Origin: Oculina patagonica
Lineage: Eukaryota
Direction: 5' to 3'
DNA length: 64,000 nucleotides
Assembly (NCBI RefSeq): GCF_052425735.1
Contig: NC_135761.1
Coordinates: 35,216,001 to 35,280,000 of the forward strand
The notes below the pieces were generated by a model, which did no database searches, had not been told where the DNA came from, and saw only the letters and a program-made list of their open reading frames with translations. Of the stretch, positions 14,140 to 24,783 are shown piece by piece. Position 1 is the stretch's first letter. Every line of letters begins with the position of its first letter. Position numbers and translations under genes: made by a program.

Positions 14140-15318
14140 TGTGACTTCTGTAAAGACCTCTAAAAACATCAGCGAGGTTGACTTCTCTCAGTTTAGATCT
14201 TGCAAAACATCAGCGATGTCTCTGTGACTTCTGTTCAGATCTTGCAAAACATCAGTGATGTCTTTGTGACTTCTGTTTAGATCTTGCAAAACATCAGCGA
14301 TGTCTTTGTGACTTCCGTTTAGATCTTGCAAAACATCAGTGATGTCTTTGTGACTTCTGTTTATTTTTGGTCTTTGTGACTTCTGTTTATTTAGATCTTG
14401 CAAAACATCAGTGATGTCTTTGTGACTTCTGTTTATTTTTGGTCTTTGTGACTTCTGTTTATTTAGATCTTGCAAAACATCAGTGATGTCTTTGTGACTT
14501 CTGTTTATTTAGATCTTGCAAAACATCAGTGATGTCTTTGTGACTTCTGTTTAGATCTTGCAAAACATTGGCGATGTCTTTGTGACTTCCGCTTAGATCT
14601 TGCAAAACATCAGCGATGTCTTTGTGACTTCTGTTCAGATCTTGCAAAACATTGGCGATGTCTTTGTGACTTCTGTTTAGATCTTGCAAAACATCGTCAA
14701 TGTCTTTTTAACTAGCTTCTGTTTAGATCCTGGAAAACATTTTTGGTTGGTTGGTGTTTGTTGTTAGATAAGGTTGTGCGAAATAATTTTTTAGATCTTG
14801 CAAAACATCAGTGATGTCTCTGTGACTTCTGTTTATTCAGATCTTGCAAAACATCAGTGATGTCTCTGTGACTTCTGTTTATTCAGATCTTGCAAAACAT
14901 CAGCGATGTCTTTGTGACTTCTGTTTAGATCTTGCAAAACATCAGCGATGTCTTTGTGACTTCTGTTTAGATCTTGCAAAACATCAGTGATGTCTTTGTG
15001 ACTTCTGTTTATTTTTGGTCTTTGTGACTTCTGTTTAGATCTTGCAAAACATCAGTGATGTCTTTGTGACTTCTGTTTAGATCTTGCAAAACATTGGCGA
15101 TGTCTTTGAGACTTTCGCTTAGATCTTGCAAAACATCAGCAATGTCTTTGTGACTTCTGTTCAGATCTTGCAAAACATTGGCGATGTCTTTGTGACTTCT
15201 GTTTAGATCTTGCAAAACATCGCCAATGTCTTTTTAACTAGCTTCTGTTTAGATCCTGGAAAACATTTTTGGTTGGTTGGTGTTTGTTGTTAGATAAGGT
15301 TGTGCGAAATAATTTTTA
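14140..15318. repeat. 42-bp minisatellite with higher-order duplication
   Basis: Unit ttagatcttgcaaaacatcagtgatgtctttgtgacttctgt. Two blocks each end in the same ~90-bp tail (14700-14792 and 15227-15317). Confidence 0.95.
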
Positions 15319-16365: not shown

Positions 16366-16983
16366 AAAAAACAGGTCCATGTTCTGCACCATTAATACTT
16401 ATTTTTTTGTCTTTCCGGGGTACATGTCAATTCTATAAGCTGAAGTGTGTTTTTTAGATTTTGGCCACCGACAAATGTCGTATCAGAACACTGAATGGGA
16501 ATCTACCTCTGTTTCTATGAGAACGCATGCCTAATTGCAACTTAACAAACTGAATGGGTTTCTTTATGACCGAATAGCTATCGGAAATTCCTCGGAAATC
16601 TGCAGCAATCCCCTAACAATTTTCGAATCGCATCAATAACCTTCAGAAATCACCCATTACAAGTTTATTGAATATATATTTATATAAAAAAGAATAAATG
16701 GAACGCTAAGAGATTTATCTTCTAGCTTCGAAATAGATTTGAGAACCTTAAGAACCTTAAGATAAATTGGATGTCTCCAAGCACTTACGTCAAAAGTGAC
16801 TATATTTGGCACTCTCTGTGATCTGTAAAGTTTCATTCTAGATACAGCCTTTAGAAATGGAATGAGAAATCTGACATTTCGCCATTTATTCACCACTGAA
16901 AGTAAAACAATTTGATTGGCATGCCACTTGTACAGTTGCTAGTTATACAAATGTAGTTAAACTTTTTATTACAGTACGTGACC

Positions 16984-18411
16984 ATGGAAGAGACAATCGT
17001 TTCCTGGCTAAATGTAAATTACGAAACTGGAAAAGACACAGATTTTATCCCTAAAGAAAGCTTATGGGATGAATTTGTCAATGAAAGAGTAGTCAACTTC
17101 AGCAGAGAAGAGTTTTTCACGCGTCTCGAGCGATGTATAGGTCAAAGTTCATTGAAGGGAATCAAGTCAACGCGCTGTAAAGGCAAAAGAAATGGCTACA
17201 AAGGCTTGCGAAAGAAACAGGGGCGAAACGAAGTACAAAGTTGTCACAGTGATTTCAATAGTAAGAAAAGAAACAAGGAAGAGAGTAGCAAAAGTAGAGG
17301 GGATGATGCTGAGGTTCCACCAGATGATAAATTAGAAGACAGTCAGTTCTCTTCAGAAAAAATGCGTGGGGTCTGTCAAGAAAACGCACATAAGGAAGAA
17401 GCTGGTACCTAAGAGAATAGCAGGCAAGATGGCAAGAAAGAAAGTAGCGTAGTTACACGGGATAATGCTGAGGTACCAACAAATGAAAATTTAGACGACC
17501 TGCAAATCTCTTCAGGAATAGATGGAGAAGCCTTCCAAGAAAACGCACTGAAAGACCAAGTGGATTGCTTGGGAGAAACCATTTTTGAAGATGTAGTCAC
17601 GGGCGCCGAAGCGTGGACTGATGATGAGAGCAATGATGATGATGAGGCTATTAAGTGCCAAAAATCGAAAAAGCGAAAACCAAGCAGCTCCAGTTCCTCC
17701 TCAAGTACACTGGGTTTGGGCTCTTCGAAGTCTTGGAAACGAAAAACCAGGCATCAAATCAAACGGAAGCCAGTTTTGGTTAGCTCGGAGGAGGAGGAAC
17801 ATTCTCCTGAAAGATTTTACCAAAACCACCACAGGAAATTTAAATGTCTTCTACCCAAGCATCTACCAAATCGTCCTAGGACGTTCCGTGATTATTTGTG
17901 CAGTATTCTGAAAATGCCAAAGACAGAAAATCCACGACGAATTGATATTCATAGCCATTCAGCTGGTGTAGTAACCAATGACAGTGCTCTTCGCCGATCG
18001 TTTATTGCTGCATCCTTCCCTCCTGTCAAAGTTGGTCAGGTAGCCGGTGTCGAGATAAAACATACCTTCCCCGGTGACATGTTTCCACAGTTTACTCATC
18101 ATGGGAAAAGTAATTATCATTGCGAGATATGCATCCCCTTCCAGAGGTGGGCCACGACAAACGGTGTGAAACATTCTGCGTTAAAGTCTAAGCAACTTAC
18201 CATCGACGACATAATAAATGACACTGCCATCTTGAATTTTTCTGGTGTGGTTCAGGTTCATGAGCACTCTAATTCTAAATCTCACCAAGAAGCCATTGAC
18301 TTTTTCAAACGAGATCTCACAGAAAAGGTTGCCAAGGCACATGGAGGAAAACCGGTGAACAAGGTAGTGACCATCACCGATTACTTTGGGTCAAAGAAGC
18401 CTTTAAACTGA
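16984..18411 (+). CDS. ORF-A of large transposase gene: RFX-like winged helix, acidic duplicated repeat, C2H2-like Zn finger, PIP-like motif; one in-frame TAA at 17410
   Basis: ATG in accATGg just after acceptor ttttattacag (16974). WLNVNYE...IPKESLWDEF...FFTRL...KGKRNGYKGLRKK resembles the RFX wHTH. YHCEIC...HEHSNSKSHQEAI is the Zn finger; VTITDYFGSKK is PIP-like. ORFs 16978 and 17560 are in the same frame, separated by a single TAA. Confidence 0.65.
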
Positions 18412-18491
18412 GTACGACCTCTGGTTCCACTGAAGACGATAACAAACCACGCAGTGTCAGGTGTCTTTATTACTGGGATCCAGAGGTCGTA
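18402..18491 (+). promoter_or_regulatory. Candidate -1 programmed ribosomal frameshift signal (T TTA AAC slippery heptamer + downstream stem-loop)
   Basis: ORF-A ends cct tta aac tga, giving X XXY YYZ in the correct phase (18402-18408). tacgacctctgg (18413-18424) pairs perfectly with ccagaggtcgta (18480-18491). The -1 frame is open from 18300 to 23639. Confidence 0.75.
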
Positions 18492-21400
18492 AAACATTTC
18501 GAAAATGACAAACAAATTAGACGCACCACATCTCAATCGCTGTTCAAGAAAAGGCTTTATGAAGGTGTCGTACGATGCTACAAAGACTCCGTAAATCATA
18601 AGCAGTGTTACAGGTACAAGGATTGGACGAAAAAACATCCAGGGGAGCGAAAACTCCTTGTGGAAGAAGCAAGCAAACACCCAAAATCGGTGTACATTCC
18701 ACTTCAGGAAACGATTAGAGTCCACGGAAAGGCCATCGCGGTAACCGGAGGTATCAAAAGCCTAGATCCTCCATGCTTAGAGAAAGCAATGTCGCATGGC
18801 AAATATCCATTCACTTGCTCAAACTGTGCCAGACAGGATAGAGATTTGAAGAATACTCTTCAGCACCGACACGGTGGAAGTCTCAAAGATAACAAGAACC
18901 GAATTGGTCTAAGCGGTTTCAACAAACGGTACGCCAGAAAAGGTGAGATAGACGATGCCCTTGAAAAAGCAGAATATGGCCGCAGATCTGCACAAAAGAA
19001 AATAAAGGAAATGGCCAAGGTTAAACTTGCCCCAAGGGAGATTGAGGACTGTTTGCTTGACTCTTGTATCGCTGGAGACGAGCAAAAACTCGTCATCGAC
19101 CTGGTTCGTTTGTTAAAATCAGATATGGCAAAAAGAAAGCCAGTGCAAATCCTTGTGTTGCAAAATTTGGTCTCAAAGCTACTCAAGAACAATAACCATC
19201 ACTACGCTTCATTAATCAAAGATTTCAGTGCACTATTTAAGAATGAGCTGGGTCCAACCAATTACTCGCTCTTAGCAGAAGCTTTTGGCCTAGCTCGGGC
19301 AACAACAGCAGCAAGCCATGGCTCTGAAACGCGTCTTGATCCTGGTATCAACAATGAGGCCCTTGAGACGGCTGCAAATCTTTTCAAGAAATTGCCTGTA
19401 AACGAAGCAAGTGATGGAGCACGGGCACTCAGATTTTTGCAAGCACGAAAGAACGCCAATGGAGAGGTCATGCTAGTTGGTCAAGGGTGGGACCCGAATG
19501 TTCAACGCTGGAATCTTCAAGAAGTTCCACTCCCCAGGAAAGATGCTAAGAAGGGCGACAAAGATGACTTTACAGCTCTCAAACGGTACATTGACAATGT
19601 TATCGAACATGATTCCCTCGCCAAGACAGTATCGATACATAATCTTAACTGCCTAACGTCTATGGAACAACCCTCCATCATTTACTGTTTGTGGCCAACT
19701 AAAGACAAGGGGTATACTGGAAAGCACCTGCTCAATTATTGGCAAGAGTTACGAAGATTGTGTTATTACAACGAGAAAGGAGAAGTCAGAGAAGAGCCAA
19801 TACATTTGCTGGGCTATTCTACTGACTCTGCTGGGTTCTCACTATCTGCGGCTGTTCATTTAATGACCCCACGTGCAGAAGATATTGCCAATGGTGTTCG
19901 TTATCTTGGACTGGGTGTTGAAGATGAGAAATTTATGTCTCCTTATTACTGGTTTCTGCCTGCAATCTGTTTCCTAGATTATGATCACGAACAGAGGCTG
20001 TTTCTCAAAAATCTGAAGTACGAGACAAGGGAGCTAACGTTTTGGAAAGAAGAGGATTCTACCACTCGAATGGCTTCAATTCAACATTTGAAAGATCTCA
20101 GACAGCGATGCCAAGAGAAAGGGTTGGATTCCGGTCTCAAAGCAACCGACCTTATTCTGATCTATTTTTGCGATCAGAACTCAGATGCCTGTGAACGCTT
20201 ATTCACAGAACGGATTGCTGACCTTCTTGACACCCACGTAAATGGCTCACAGGGCACCAGCCTCTATATCCGCTCCGTGTTTCATTTGATCCAACCTTTC
20301 AGAAAACCTGATTTTGGTTCACCGTTTGATGTCCAGAAGTCTGTGTCCTGTGGCATAACTATATTGCGTTTGTGGAGAAAAGTCGTTGAGCTTCAAAAGC
20401 GACTCCTTCATTCAAAACCTGGTGCCAAGAAGATACCAGCAAACAGAGGACATTATATTACCCGTGGATGTTATCTCACTGCGGAAGTCTTATTTGCAGC
20501 GGCCACCCTACATCAACTTGCGATGTTTCTGCACTTTCCCAACGAAGCCGAAGCATGGGCTTCACCTCACAACTCGGGAACGAAAACAACGGAGAGAATT
20601 ATAAGCGAACTACAAGGAAAAACAACAGAATTACAGTCTCTAGATTCGCAGCCAACGTTTGGTGACATGCTTGACAAGAGTGGGAAGGTGCAGTTTAATT
20701 TAAATGCCAAGAGAAGAATTGCAGCAGCCGGCATAAACGTGAAATCGTCTTCAAAGAGGAAGCAAATGGCATTTGCATTCAAGCCCTGTGGGCGACCTAG
20801 AGAATCAGCAGGTCTCCACGAGTTCACATCATACACAGCTTTCAGAGAGATGCAGAAAAAAGCACACCATGAAGGGGTGAGAGATGGGCAAGACCTTTTC
20901 GAAAAATACATGCCTCGGTCATGTGTTGACCTCCTCAAGGAGAATGACAGTTGGGACTTTCCCTACAAATTCAACCATCCAAGTGACTTGCAGCTGTGTG
21001 ATGGAGACCTTCCAGAGAATTACAACAAACTTGATTTGGACGTAAGTGCAGGATCTCTTGTTGAAGATATTGCACTTGAATTGTCGAAGGATCAAGATGA
21101 AGACGACTGTGTTACAACCTCAACCGATTCTCTACTTGACCTAGAGCAGGAAGACCTGGAACAAGAACTAGATGCAGATTCAAAAAGCGAAAAATGGATG
21201 ATTTCAAAGATGGAGCAGGGAAAGCTGAGTAACATCCATATTAGTCAAGCAATTAAAATCTTATTGCCAAGAGAGTATATCGCAAGATGCCGGCAGAAAA
21301 GACACTGGGCTGCCAAGTATTTACCTGGTAAGGAACCTCTAAATCCCGAGCACGATATATTCGTTTTTGGAAATGTTGCTCTAAAGAGAAAGAAGGAAGG

Positions 21401-23639
21401 TGTCAACACATTTTTAATATCACGTGTGGAAAGAATTGAGTCAATCAAAGATGGAGCAGAGGTATTAAGCTTTAAGCTTAAAAACAGTCCACAAGTACGA
21501 TTACGTTGTGCCTTGTATGCCCGTGTTACGTGTGATGATGCTGATGACGAATACCAAGTGGGAGATGAAATAGTGTTGACGCCTTGGAGATCACCTTCTG
21601 GAATTTTGGGTCCAGTTCAATTGCTTCCCATTGCAGAAAAACCAGGTGGCTACTTGTTACACGAAGAATCGAAGAAGTGGCTAAAGAGTGTAGGCTATGT
21701 TCCATTTGATGAAAACATCAATAAAAGAGAAGAAGTTGCTGAAATATCTTCCCATGAACAGGAACTTGAAGAAGGATTTTACGAAGTAGAAGACGTGCTG
21801 GAAAGAAGGCTGTGTAAAGACATGACGTATCAATTTCACGTCAGATTCAAGGGTTACGGACCAGAAGATGATATGTGGTTGCCAGCATCAGCATTTAACA
21901 GATCAGTGGCTTTCGAGTCAACATCACGCTTTGGAAGAAAGCGGAAACACAGGACTGACGAGACATCCCTTTTGCTTAATACAAGCAAAGACGAAACCTG
22001 TAGGGAAACACAAAGATCATCTAAACGAATGAAGGACGGGGAGAATACAAAGACAAAAAATGATAAAGCTCACAACAGCCAAGCAGACCGAGAATCTACA
22101 CCGCCGCTCAAACATAGTTCATCAAAACGCAAGGGACAGCAGGAACTACCAAAGAAGAAGGAGAAGAAGACAAACGTGGCAAAAGGGAAAGGCTTTCGCC
22201 AAAGTCTTCTAAATTCACAGGGCGGCAAGATCACTGAAAGTGAAACAATGGACAAATCCCCCGACCATGCTAGTGAAGAAGAGTACGCTCACCACAGCCA
22301 TGCAGACCGAGAATCTACACCGCTGTTCAAAGATAGCTTATCAAAACGCAAGGGACAAAAGGCGCTGTCGAAGAAGAAGGGGGAAAACATAGCAAAAGGG
22401 AAACACTTTCGCCAGAGTTGTCCAGATTCACAAGGCGGCAAGATCAATGAAAATGAATCAATGGACAAATCCTCCGATCATGCTATCACCCTCTCTAGCG
22501 ACGAAGAGAACGAAGAGTTAATGAAAACGCCATCCTTTAGCTATGATGTGAGGTATTGGACTTTAGAAGACCTCAGGTGCCGAGATGACAACTTCGCAAC
22601 CCCACGTAGGCAATTAGCTAAGGCAGAACTTCCAACTGTTGACAGAGGTATTCAACATTACAGTATCAAATCCTTTACAAGTAAGAACAATGTAAAGCCT
22701 CAAGATCCTCTTGCTGTTGATAGAGTTCCTCCAATGTCTGTGTTGGATCAGTCTATGGAGGCACTTCGTGAAATAGTGAACAAGAAGGCAAGACAGAAAC
22801 GAAATGACTACGTCATAGAATATCAACACTATGGATGCTTCACACTAGAAGGATTGCGAATACTCAGTAGGTACAACACAATACGAAGTGTGGCTAGACA
22901 AGTACCTGAAGAAATAAGGTGGATGACAACGGCCTTTGAAACATTTCCTGAGATGGACAGGACGTTGGTGGCTGGAGCCTTGCTTGACCGGTGGAATACA
23001 AGTGGCAACCTGCTGGTGGATTTTAAAGGCTATAAGATAACTTCGCAGGATTTGTCCGTTTTATGCTGCGAGCGATACCTGAATGACGAGGTAATGAACT
23101 TACTTATTATCAAGTACTGTGAAGAGGCAAATAAGCGTCGTCAAGGAGAAGTCTTCACCATGCTACCCAGTTATGTGACATCACTCTTTGGAACTAACGC
23201 AATCCACCAAGTTTGCGCGAATGTTGATATGAGCAAGGTAGATATAGTATTTCTTCCTATGCATCTACACGGTTGTCACTGGGGACTTGCTGTTTTCTAT
23301 GTCAAGAAGCAGGAGGTGCAGTTTGACGACGGCTATCATTGCCCGATCACTAACGAGATGGAAAGCACCATCAACGGTATCTTAAGAACTTTCCACCAAG
23401 CTACCAGCCTGCCGTGTTTTGAACCCTCTTGTTGGAGTGGAGTTCAAAGATTCAAAATACCAATGCCAGATCAGCCTGCAGTCTCTGCAAGTTTTCTAAA
23501 TGGTACAGGCAGTTGTGGGGTTGGAGTTTTGTGTTGTGTGCGAGACATTTGTAACGGGTTTCGTGAAGCATTCACATGGACCTTTGATGATGCCCCGCAT
23601 CTACGAGCTCAGCTTATGGTGGAATTGTTGAAAGCATAA
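18408..23639 (+). CDS. ORF-B: P-element-superfamily-like DDE transposase fused to chromodomain and Ulp1/SENP (C48) protease
   Basis: 1743 uninterrupted codons. Motifs EASDG, YSTDSAG, DYDHEQRLFLKN (DxxH), DQNSDACERLF and SGTKTTERIISELQG parallel P-element transposase motifs. Chromodomain YEVEDVLERR...FHVRFKGYGPEDDMWLPASAF (~21780-21900). Ulp1 YLNDEVMN...HWGLAVF...FDDG...PDQ...GSCGVGV (~23030-23636). ~70-aa internal duplication at 22068-22490. Element termini not found. Confidence 0.8.
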   Translation: MSTTSGSTEDDNKPRSVRCLYYWDPEVVKHFENDKQIRRTTSQSLFKKRLYEGVVRCYKDSVNHKQCYRYKDWTKKHPGERKLLVEEASKHPKSVYIPLQETIRVHGKAIAVTGGIKSLDPPCLEKAMSHGKYPFTCSNCARQDRDLKNTLQHRHGGSLKDNKNRIGLSGFNKRYARKGEIDDALEKAEYGRRSAQKKIKEMAKVKLAPREIEDCLLDSCIAGDEQKLVIDLVRLLKSDMAKRKPVQILVLQNLVSKLLKNNNHHYASLIKDFSALFKNELGPTNYSLLAEAFGLARATTAASHGSETRLDPGINNEALETAANLFKKLPVNEASDGARALRFLQARKNANGEVMLVGQGWDPNVQRWNLQEVPLPRKDAKKGDKDDFTALKRYIDNVIEHDSLAKTVSIHNLNCLTSMEQPSIIYCLWPTKDKGYTGKHLLNYWQELRRLCYYNEKGEVREEPIHLLGYSTDSAGFSLSAAVHLMTPRAEDIANGVRYLGLGVEDEKFMSPYYWFLPAICFLDYDHEQRLFLKNLKYETRELTFWKEEDSTTRMASIQHLKDLRQRCQEKGLDSGLKATDLILIYFCDQNSDACERLFTERIADLLDTHVNGSQGTSLYIRSVFHLIQPFRKPDFGSPFDVQKSVSCGITILRLWRKVVELQKRLLHSKPGAKKIPANRGHYITRGCYLTAEVLFAAATLHQLAMFLHFPNEAEAWASPHNSGTKTTERIISELQGKTTELQSLDSQPTFGDMLDKSGKVQFNLNAKRRIAAAGINVKSSSKRKQMAFAFKPCGRPRESAGLHEFTSYTAFREMQKKAHHEGVRDGQDLFEKYMPRSCVDLLKENDSWDFPYKFNHPSDLQLCDGDLPENYNKLDLDVSAGSLVEDIALELSKDQDEDDCVTTSTDSLLDLEQEDLEQELDADSKSEKWMISKMEQGKLSNIHISQAIKILLPREYIARCRQKRHWAAKYLPGKEPLNPEHDIFVFGNVALKRKKEGVNTFLISRVERIESIKDGAEVLSFKLKNSPQVRLRCALYARVTCDDADDEYQVGDEIVLTPWRSPSGILGPVQLLPIAEKPGGYLLHEESKKWLKSVGYVPFDENINKREEVAEISSHEQELEEGFYEVEDVLERRLCKDMTYQFHVRFKGYGPEDDMWLPASAFNRSVAFESTSRFGRKRKHRTDETSLLLNTSKDETCRETQRSSKRMKDGENTKTKNDKAHNSQADRESTPPLKHSSSKRKGQQELPKKKEKKTNVAKGKGFRQSLLNSQGGKITESETMDKSPDHASEEEYAHHSHADRESTPLFKDSLSKRKGQKALSKKKGENIAKGKHFRQSCPDSQGGKINENESMDKSSDHAITLSSDEENEELMKTPSFSYDVRYWTLEDLRCRDDNFATPRRQLAKAELPTVDRGIQHYSIKSFTSKNNVKPQDPLAVDRVPPMSVLDQSMEALREIVNKKARQKRNDYVIEYQHYGCFTLEGLRILSRYNTIRSVARQVPEEIRWMTTAFETFPEMDRTLVAGALLDRWNTSGNLLVDFKGYKITSQDLSVLCCERYLNDEVMNLLIIKYCEEANKRRQGEVFTMLPSYVTSLFGTNAIHQVCANVDMSKVDIVFLPMHLHGCHWGLAVFYVKKQEVQFDDGYHCPITNEMESTINGILRTFHQATSLPCFEPSCWSGVQRFKIPMPDQPAVSASFLNGTGSCGVGVLCCVRDICNGFREAFTWTFDDAPHLRAQLMVELLKA

Positions 23640-24783
23640 TGGTCAAAATTTATTCTTCACTTAAACTCAAGCCTTCATTACTACGAGAGATATTGCTCAA
23701 GACAATCAATTGGTTATGTAAAGCGTCGCAAATGCTCCACTGCGTACCTATAATTAAGGATCTTGGCCATTTCTCTTTAGTCTAAGTGTTCAGGAGAGCG
23801 TGACACTTACGTGACTTTGTCGTGAGGTTTTGTTTAATGTCATTTTAAATGAGTGACAGATGTCAAGAGAAGGTTCGCGCGGTTTTGACTAGTTTTCACG
23901 AGGTTGGATATGTTTTTGACCGATTAAAAGTTGTGTTTATTTCCATCGTCGCAAGATGCCTTTCCATCGTTGCAACACTAAGCGTCGGAAGTCTTTTTTT
24001 TACGTAAATGAAGTATCTTCCCGTCCTCGAGTTATGCCCTTTTAGAAATTCTCCCACACAAAACCAAGGAAGAGAGTAATCTATTCGTTTAATAAATGTT
24101 GTAAACCGTTAGGTAATTCAGATATTTTTTTGGCCTATTTTCTATATAATTTATTTGAAAAAGCGGCTTAAAAACATCCTGGCGACAATGAGTTGGGTTG
24201 GTGACCCAATGATACCCCCTGTTAAGACTGAAATCTTTCGTCTTGTTGTGGTTTGTCAGGGAAAACAGGCGAGCTAGGGTAACCAATCCCTGGGGAGTCC
24301 CCCACAAATAACACAAGTGGCAAGCCTTCAGTCTCAGGATAATACCCTCGTGTATACAGTATGAAGTAGCCTGAATTTCAGCGGCTTCCTCGTGTCGCTT
24401 GCTCCCGAAACGAAATCAATTCGAAAACAAAAGCTGCTAATGCCGACGGTATCGTCACTACAGCTTATCTCATTGTATGTTAATTAAGATATTCGCATAA
24501 TTATGTGCAATTTTGAATCAACTCCAGCGCGGACAAGAATTCGAGTTTCTCCAAATCGAACTATCAAATTTGGAAGTCGAAATTTCGACAAATTATATCG
24601 TTAACTGGAAATTGAACTTTGTTAGTTCTACATCGACTATACGCCTTTTTTAATATGCTTTCGAATGAAACATTAATATAATTGTAATAGAAAGCCGATA
24701 AGTTTAACAGAATATTATTTGCAGTTAAATATGATGCAAGTTTGCCAAAATGCAATCAAAGTCAGCTTTAAGGTTTTCAAAAT

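Follow-up and report, generated by a model that had tools for sequence, protein, structure and literature searches.

A P-like transposase gene of the stony coral Oculina patagonica with a probable programmed -1 frameshift site

Transposases that depend on ribosomal frameshifting are classical in the bacterial IS1 and IS3 elements. A gene with a comparable layout lies in a 64,000-nucleotide stretch of the genome of the coral Oculina patagonica (NCBI RefSeq assembly GCF_052425735.1, contig NC_135761.1, forward-strand positions 35,216,001 to 35,280,000). This whole stretch is referred to below as the window, and positions are given in its coordinates. The gene is P-superfamily transposase-like and, judging from its sequence, very probably relies on a programmed -1 ribosomal frameshift (PRF). 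As in IS1 and IS3, two frames overlap, the upstream one (open reading frame A, ORF-A) carrying a module of nucleic-acid-binding type and the downstream -1 frame (ORF-B) a DDE core; a slippery heptamer and a stem accompany the overlap, and the full transposase would be made solely by frameshifting. The likeness is one of gene organisation only, the structural neighbours of ORF-B being the P element and RAG/Transib. The coral gene is also eukaryotic and P-like, its heptamer reads U_UUA_AAC and not the usual A_AAA_AAG, and its predicted fusion protein is far larger (2218 amino acids, aa), including a chromodomain and an Ulp1 protease.

A precedent among eukaryotic DNA transposases is KAT1 of Kluyveromyces lactis, a domesticated hAT/Roamer transposase produced through a programmed -1 frameshift that limits its expression (PMC4763223; PMC4316626), and ciliate transposon-derived genes need +1 shifts (PMC5009743). 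KAT1 and the coral gene would have in common that a gene derived from a eukaryotic DNA transposase requires a -1 translational frameshift. KAT1, however, is a single domesticated fungal gene of hAT descent, whereas the coral gene belongs to a P-superfamily gene family in which a canonical heptamer-plus-hairpin is found across many paralogues and species. An earlier note on this stretch, made from the letters alone, knew of no described case for P-like eukaryotic transposons. Full-text literature searches retrieved nothing on ribosomal frameshifting in P-like genes or in the DNA transposons of animals, which upholds that statement for P-like and animal DNA transposons, while KAT1 limits it where eukaryotic DNA transposases at large are concerned. 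The same kind of search retrieved no P-like transposase joined to a chromodomain and an Ulp1 protease.

With the P element transposase and THAP9 the coral protein shares a predicted catalytic-core fold with an insertion domain, and it has an invariant candidate for the acidic triad; it differs from them by having no THAP match and by its additional chromodomain and Ulp1 protease. P elements produce truncated N-terminal repressors by alternative splicing (PMC7776569), whereas the short and long coral forms would be split by frameshifting and not by intron retention.

UUUAAAC is the slippery heptamer of coronaviruses and is functional on eukaryotic ribosomes. The ORF1a/1b junctions of coronaviruses and arteriviruses have the identical heptamer and a stable structure a few nucleotides (nt) downstream, but the coral structure is a long-loop hairpin with no demonstrated pseudoknot, its stop codon abuts the heptamer and the locus is cellular DNA. 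Among animal genes, PEG10 and the PNMA/Ma3 genes derive from retroelements and use heptamer-plus-structure -1 PRF to give a short and a fusion product. Their descent is from long-terminal-repeat gag-pol (for the PNMA/Ma3 family see PMC3406341) and their PRF is ancestral, whereas the coral frameshift would have arisen within a DNA-transposon-type family from a fused ancestor. The signal and logic found in the coral are canonical; what is new is the class of gene and the kingdom in which they occur, together with their independent origin.

Junction anatomy and conservation

ORF-A of the window copy ends in ...AAG CCT TTA AAC TGA, so that T_TTA_AAC falls into the X_XXY_YYZ phase. The -1 frame, already open at 18300, has its first ATG at about 18789 (Table 1). 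The phased heptamer, the adjoining stop and the open -1 frame had been claimed in the earlier note and agree with the sequence at 18402-18411 and with the translation of a 1743-codon frame, ATG-free until about 18789; the transframe product of about 2218 aa that it proposed follows from the sum of 475 and 1743. The strong hairpin that it placed between 18413 and 18491 is also present, the arms 18413-18428 and 18476-18491 being complementary over 16 nt (94%). The 4-nt spacer of that proposal, in contrast, reflects a 3-bp extension of the stem that is unique to the window copy; the conserved stem starts at 18416, leaving a spacer of 7 nt. Canonical spacers between heptamer and structure measure 5-9 nt. 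The 92-nt hairpin segment has a minimum free energy (MFE) of -33.6 kcal/mol (z = -4.2); 200 dinucleotide shuffles gave no fold of equal stability.

Table 1. Coordinates of the gene's features in the window
Feature	Positions	Strand	Remarks
ORF-A, 0-frame, 475 codons	16984..18411	+	ATG 16984 to TGA 18409-18411; in-frame TAA in assembly
In-frame TAA within ORF-A	17410..17412	+	polymorphic or assembly-private; TTA (Leu) in other runs
Predicted zinc-finger core C-x2-C ... H-x5-H, ORF-A C-terminal domain	18121..18285	+	C125, C128, H173, H179 of window:17749-18408
Slippery heptamer T_TTA_AAC	18402..18408	+	in ORF-A phase; CTTTAAAC same in 16/16 aligned junctions
0-frame stop TGA, abutting heptamer	18409..18411	+	homologues: TGA/TAG/TAA 0-7 codons past AAC
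Spacer, 7 nt, heptamer to conserved stem	18409..18415	+	alignment A1 columns 20-26
Conserved 13-bp stem, 5' arm	18416..18428	+	extended by 18413-15 in window copy
Conserved 13-bp stem, 3' arm	18476..18488	+	extended by 18489-91 in window copy; 90% of cells pair
ORF-B, -1 frame, 1743 codons	18408..23639	+	CTG at 18408 to TAA 23637-23639
Predicted P-element-transposase-like RNase H core with insertion domain	19344..20981	+	AlphaFold model m3a95e75af7ad, Foldseek
Chromodomain	21780..21890	+	Pfam PF00385, E 1.2e-5, 25.5 bits vs cut-off 25.1
Ulp1/SUMO-protease (C48), best-matching stretch, C-terminus	23193..23312	+	Pfam PF02902, E 0.004, under gathering score

TTTAAAC alone is frequent, with 18 copies on the + strand of the 64-kb window, so that the heptamer by itself carries little meaning. 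The complete cassette, that is, the heptamer with GACCTC and GAGGTYG at the right spacing, occurs eight times in the 529-Mb genome, always within the P-like transposase gene family, and the reversed control pattern is found nowhere in it. An Rfam search of the junction returned no family, frameshift elements included, its lone row being a chance snoRNA match (E 0.81).

Protein searches of the genome identified several paralogues of the window gene at 40-60% identity, and the Oculina genome holds four frameshift-type lineages in six copies, if the decayed L039 and the second C1841 copy are included. In the C1 copy and both C1841 copies a perfect 12-bp stem comes after AAT CCT TTA AAC TAG. The sequence is TCT TTA AAC TGA in the C6 copy located at 27.1 Mb and CCT TTA AAC TGC TAG in the decayed C4 copy (L039), each with a stem; in all of these copies ORF-B lies in the -1 frame. 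Eight further frameshift-type junctions were found in coral assemblies and coral-associated metagenomes (L044, L045, L046, L047, L049, L050, L052 and L055; 49-88% protein identity to the window). Together with the window, C1, C1841 and C6 they constitute a set of 12 frameshift-type loci whose protein identity to the window is 40-88%. NCT TTA AAC is present in every one of the 12, with a 0-frame stop 0-7 codons past it, and in the eight loci from outside this genome the stop (TGA, TAG or TAA) follows AAC after 0, 1 or 7 codons.

In frameshift-type loci the heptamer and the end of the 3' arm are 74, 77, 83 or 89 nt apart, each value being 2 mod 3; in the fused L037, L038, L053 and L054 they are 87 nt apart, which is 0 mod 3. 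Depending on the copy, the -1 frame opens just 4-36 codons 5' of the heptamer, which restricts the permitted shift to a window of about six codons with the heptamer inside it. The -1-frame peptide is conserved directly from the heptamer onward, upstream of any ATG, and no start codon near the junction is conserved across the homologues. A search with ORF-A revealed many more independently called ORF-A proteins ending in ...PLN; in one of them the first stop has mutated to sense and the protein ends at the next 0-frame stop. The gene models P0035 (Desmophyllum pertusum) and P0058 (Porites evermanni) join ORF-A- and ORF-B-type parts while skipping the junction, and their bridging introns are probably predictor artefacts that pass the frameshift.

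Some family members encode both parts in one frame. The C4 copy at 33.99 Mb and its shortened C8 duplicate keep CCT TTA AAC within a single continuous frame, and the most divergent Oculina paralogue (C6, 14.0 Mb) has a single frame and no slippery site. The earlier note had advised aligning homologues, and the -1 junction, the heptamer and a stem with compensatory changes are indeed kept in the 12 loci. It had also envisaged that most homologous copies might be continuous; this holds for a nested clade and for a distant outgroup, but these are the minority and the nested clade retains heptamer and stem.

The RNA structure was studied in an alignment of 16 junction sequences (A1, helix columns 27-39 with 87-99), in which CTTTAAAC, GACCTC and GAGGT are the same throughout, in contrast to freely varying flanks. 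Across A1, 90% of the cells of the 13-bp stem pair, and sliding the partner by 1-3 columns lowers pairing to only 23-61%. Pair 33-93 is U-A in eight of the 16 sequences, A-U in five, C-G in two and U-G in one; at pair 35-91, 11 sequences have G-C and five have A-U; pair 36-90 is G-C in five and A-U in three. Three stem pairs are thereby doubly compensated, the U-G intermediate between U-A and C-G included, and the observed covariation was reached by none of 500 shuffles. The covariation is modest but real. All frameshift-type junctions fold into the same long stem, with an MFE of -25 to -42 kcal/mol and z of -3.8 to -8. GACCTC in the 5' arm is fixed, yet the arm is read as T-S-G/E-S in frameshift-type loci and as G-P-P or R-P-L in fused ones; its nucleotides are kept across two reading frames, which points to a constraint at the RNA and not at the protein level.

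Comparison of the window with L047 and L044 gave ratios of nonsynonymous to synonymous change (dN/dS) of 0.14 for ORF-A and 0.06-0.08 for ORF-B, indicating purifying selection on both. The proportion of synonymous differences (pS) is 0.7-0.9, i.e. saturated, in these and in every deeper comparison. TTA accounts for only 15% of the family's Leu codons and AAC for 45% of its Asn codons, yet neither varies at any junction, nor does the T that precedes them. An invariant heptamer at saturated synonymous sites, combined with low dN/dS, implies that both frames encode functional protein and that the heptamer is held at the nucleotide level.

The locus combines the canonical features of a -1 PRF signal: a phased heptamer, a structure, an overlapping -1 ORF with no conserved start of its own, and conservation with covariation. 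In the proposed mechanism, ribosomes translating ORF-A would reach U_UUA_AAC and pause at a hairpin of 13-16 bp located 7 nt downstream (4 nt in the window copy). The majority would terminate at the adjacent UGA, releasing a product of about 475 aa with an N-terminal domain and a CCHH zinc-finger domain. Some would slip back by one base (UUA to UUU, AAC to AAA) and resume with CUG in the -1 frame, giving the junction peptide ...KKPLN-LSTTSGS... and a 2218-aa fusion to which the P-like DDE core, the chromodomain and the Ulp1 protease are added. By analogy with OrfA of IS1/IS3 and with truncated P element repressors, the short product may regulate the long one.

Weighing the alternatives

The explanations that compete with a programmed frameshift carry, taken together, a small share of the probability. 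The one that fares best among them, still improbable, is that ORF-B is translated apart from ORF-A, by a separate transcript, by internal or non-AUG initiation or by termination-reinitiation, the heptamer and hairpin being kept for mRNA stability, pausing or coding. NCBI annotates the two parts as separate genes (P0039 and P0001), the hairpin loop of some homologues (P0003, P0014, P0007) happens to contain an ATG or a GTG, and ORF-B carries near its N-terminus a zinc-finger-like motif of its own, with invariant C109 and C112 and weak C2H2 matches. No start is conserved, however, and the window is ATG-free for about 126 codons, yet the peptide of that region is conserved. The outgroup and a re-fused clade encode the ORF-A and ORF-B parts as one protein, and an independent start would leave the invariant TTTAAAC at saturated synonymous sites unexplained. 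No other conserved route to ORF-B expression emerged among the homologues.

A shade less probable again is restoration of the frame at the RNA level, through an odd short intron of 2 mod 3 length, RNA editing or transcriptional slippage. The genome is eukaryotic and contains introns, the window has a GT after the stop and CCAG at the 3' arm, the Porites and Desmophyllum predictors placed introns over the junction (P0058, P0035), and the RNA contigs left it uncovered. Against this, the 12 junctions have no GT or AG at a fixed position (the bases after the stop are GTAC, ATGG, CTAA, CTTC, AATC etc.), and by-hand checking showed the window-specific GT-AG pairs to be in the wrong phase or to retain the stop. 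In the re-fused clade the collinear 87-nt segment is part of the translated frame, conservation of the -1-frame peptide begins right at the heptamer, and T3A3 is too short for polymerase slippage. A conserved intron at the junction was accordingly rejected, as no GT/AG pair is conserved and the pairs of the window keep the stop or misphase.

Very unlikely indeed is a dead transposon copy with a private indel, its heptamer and hairpin being there by chance. Such a view could invoke the in-frame TAA in ORF-A of the window, the lack of terminal inverted repeats or target duplications, and the clear decay of several paralogous fragments, e.g. L039. The same -1 geometry nevertheless recurs in 12 loci of several species with long intact ORFs and dN/dS of 0.06-0.14, and a private indel or pseudogene is ruled out by the shared junctions and by purifying selection. 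The TAA moreover reads TTA (Leu) elsewhere, 17411 being A>T in runs X2 and X8, which bear the same organism label; it is polymorphic or private to the assembly. A 6.3-kb contig from X2 or X8 that spans 17547-22700 shows 12 substitutions and no indel relative to the window. As this contig of another individual has the same junction, the latter is no assembly slip.

Several observations nonetheless count against a programmed frameshift at this locus, or loosen the case for it. The window copy does have a TAA inside ORF-A, which qualifies the earlier note's ORF-A of about 475 aa: the 475-codon span stands, with an in-frame stop in the assembly. The stimulator appears to be a plain long-loop hairpin in which no pseudoknot was identified, no systematic pseudoknot search having been made. 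The compensatory changes correspond to about five events on the tree, and both arms are also coding. The nested clade (L037, L053, L054 and others) has no frame change, which implies that the frameshift is dispensable for the family. Contigs of four runs were compared with 16800-22700; those from small runs guessed to be RNA match parts of ORF-A and ORF-B but miss the window junction, and no joints were seen over that interval. For the C1 paralogue, a 701-nt junction-centred stretch shares 19-33% of its words with each of five coral runs labelled metatranscriptomic RNA-Seq, which come from two studies, and 81% with one 149-Mb run; transcription of this paralogue is indicated. Both the occurrence of slippage and its efficiency are inferred. 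Even with these points taken into account, programmed -1 frameshifting is very likely the correct explanation.

Predicted products and genomic setting

ORF-A consists of an N-terminal module, which is conserved, and a domain at its C-terminus in which PQF, C-x2-C and H-x5-H do not vary (alignment A3). The model of the C-terminal domain reaches a predicted local distance difference test score (pLDDT) of 86.6. Foldseek found no match for it, and an exhaustive structural aligner gave U1/matrin-type zinc fingers as a weak best hit (Z 4.5). Nucleic-acid binding by this predicted zinc-finger domain is plausible. A repressor-like role of the short product is at most plausible by analogy, the analogues being IS OrfA and the P element repressors.

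The NCBI model of ORF-A (P0039, 438 aa) equals ORF-A minus 111 nt, a GT..AG segment at about 17406-17514 placed around the TAA, and the public collection includes a 100%-identical protein under the name 'hypothetical protein ACROYT_G014688 [Oculina patagonica]'. The intron of the model may be real or an annotation workaround; it is crossed unspliced by one contig (17316-17571) of a run presumed to be RNA. Just 5' of the slip site lies a stretch resembling a PCNA-interacting-protein (PIP) box, Q-x-x-[IL]-x-x-[FY]-F. It is degenerate in the window (VVTITDYF, 18364-18387); L052, L040 and the re-fused clade (QQSIQKFF, QQSIAKFF) have the canonical form (last block of A3). It would be situated about 8-10 residues from the C-terminus of the 0-frame product. 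PCNA-interacting peptides are usually placed near the C-terminus.

The N-terminal 836 residues of ORF-B were modelled from a 29-sequence alignment (pLDDT 78). The top Foldseek matches were the Drosophila P element transposase structures 6pe2_A (E 1.6e-9, probability 1.00, TM-score 0.60 by target length) and 6p5a_A (E 4.2e-9), with RAG1, Transib and Hermes far behind (RAG1/Transib at E 1e-3 or weaker). The 'P-like transposase' label of the earlier note thereby gains support from the fold (6pe2/6p5a, E 1.6e-9). A candidate DDE triad, D308 (19413), D445 (19824) and E701 (20592), is invariant in 29 homologues; in the model D308 lies on strand 1, D445 just past strand 4 and E701 on a helix, places where the DDE triad of an RNase H fold is expected. 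Neighbours of ORF-B in a protein atlas built on a language model carry TNP-like RNaseH/GBD families. The TNP-like Pfam families (PF21787/8/9, PF12017) did not match ORF-B at E up to 5, Pfam gave no match to a THAP domain, the CCHH finger of ORF-A being of another type, and a sequence-profile search of ORF-B against PDB sequences brought nothing useful. The predicted structure supports ORF-B being a distant P-like transposase, without Pfam-level membership. A Zisupton/KDZ identity, guessed from the Ulp1 protease, was rejected, there being no KDZ Pfam match and the predicted fold being that of the P element.

The chromodomain and, weakly, the Ulp1/C48 protease are all that Pfam detects in ORF-B, both in its C-terminal half. 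PF02902 is clear, as an unmarked match, in the homologous C-terminal ORFs of L045 and L047. The NCBI model of ORF-B (P0001, 1616 aa), a gene separate from P0039, is an internal-Met version only. Between the chromodomain and the protease (22068-22485), a 213-bp coding segment is repeated in tandem (1.9 copies, 82% matches) and encodes a lysine/serine-rich linker.

An inverted-repeat scan around the window gene gave nothing convincing, terminal inverted repeats and target-site duplications not being found. Similarity to the copies of other species is confined to coding regions, and comparison of the C1/C1841 and of the C4/C8 copies revealed only large segmental duplications (7-19 kb) or truncated copies. 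Neither 31-bp inverted repeats nor 8-bp target duplications were found, and the element boundaries are not definable from the copies compared. Few, divergent copies under purifying selection fit either low-activity transposon lineages or domesticated genes.

Tandem arrays occur around several members. About 25 copies of a 42-bp repeat occupy 14191-15266, 1.7 kb 5' of ORF-A, and the C1 and C4b paralogues are flanked by arrays with periods of about 66-68 bp and about 190 bp, respectively; such arrays could be subterminal repeats of the element or local context. In run X1 one small contig matches the minus strand over 19008-19110 and then runs on for 91 bases of unrelated sequence, starting TTGCAAGATCTAAGC, which resembles the reverse complement of the 42-bp unit and may reflect a chimeric contig or a related locus. 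A 62-nt non-coding element at 24247-24308, 600 nt past ORF-B, is 92% identical to a unit found three times downstream of the L047 gene (7789-7850, 8331-8392 and 8878-8939; period 545 nt), the other flanks being unalignable. The C1 paralogue (C1:19322000-19341999) is part of a segment of at least 14 kb present twice, in inverted orientation, on the small contig C1841 (110500-160199). Identity is 99.4% between the two C1841 copies and 97.5% between these and C1; the segment was either duplicated recently or C1841 is an unplaced haplotig.

Evolutionary history and significance

The history of the junction was read from a midpoint-rooted tree of 35 rows, built by maximum likelihood from the ORF-B core, on which a junction state was assigned for 23 of the 35. 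The root places the distant hydrozoan Clytia hemisphaerica and its relatives, which are fused and have no signal, to one side. Across the root from them the frameshift-type C6/L052 lineage diverges first, and the fused, heptamer-bearing clade is sister to the large frameshift-type clade that holds the window. Frameshift-type lineages thus bracket the re-fused clade, so that the arrangement is old. One gain from a fused ancestor followed by one later re-fusion is the most parsimonious scenario, two independent gains requiring one step more.

In the re-fused clade pS is 0.53-0.79, that is, largely saturated, yet the heptamer and a 13-bp stem persist; L037 and L053 have an A·C mismatch in the stem, L054 has a G·U pair. 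In all three of these loci the -1 frame stays open for exactly 16 codons past the heptamer (...KS*), the stop being formed by a main-frame GTT followed by a codon starting with GA or AA. These sequences hint that frameshifting may still yield a short product in this clade. It can be suggested, tentatively, that a family of P-like transposase genes in stony corals gained the -1 PRF cassette de novo from a fused ancestor, that the cassette sets the ratio of a short protein, with the PIP-box-like motif near its end, to a giant fusion, and that in the re-fused clade the signal may run in reverse, sending ribosomes into a 16-codon dead-end frame. If true, the family would be a natural experiment in which one recoding signal serves opposite default products.

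To our knowledge, well-supported -1 frameshift sites in animal cellular genes are very few, and the known ones all come from retroelement gag-pol. The Oculina site, if true, would be the first in an animal DNA-transposon-type gene, the OrfA/OrfAB logic of bacterial insertion sequences having been reinvented there. The family would also offer dated natural variants, namely members that never had the signal, members that have it and members re-fused with the signal kept, along with stem variants, making the evolution and mechanism of frameshift signals testable. Finally, in current coral annotations this gene appears as two 'hypothetical proteins' with no link between them, or its junction is bridged by invented introns, and recognition of the recoding would correct the models of Oculina, Porites, Desmophyllum and others.

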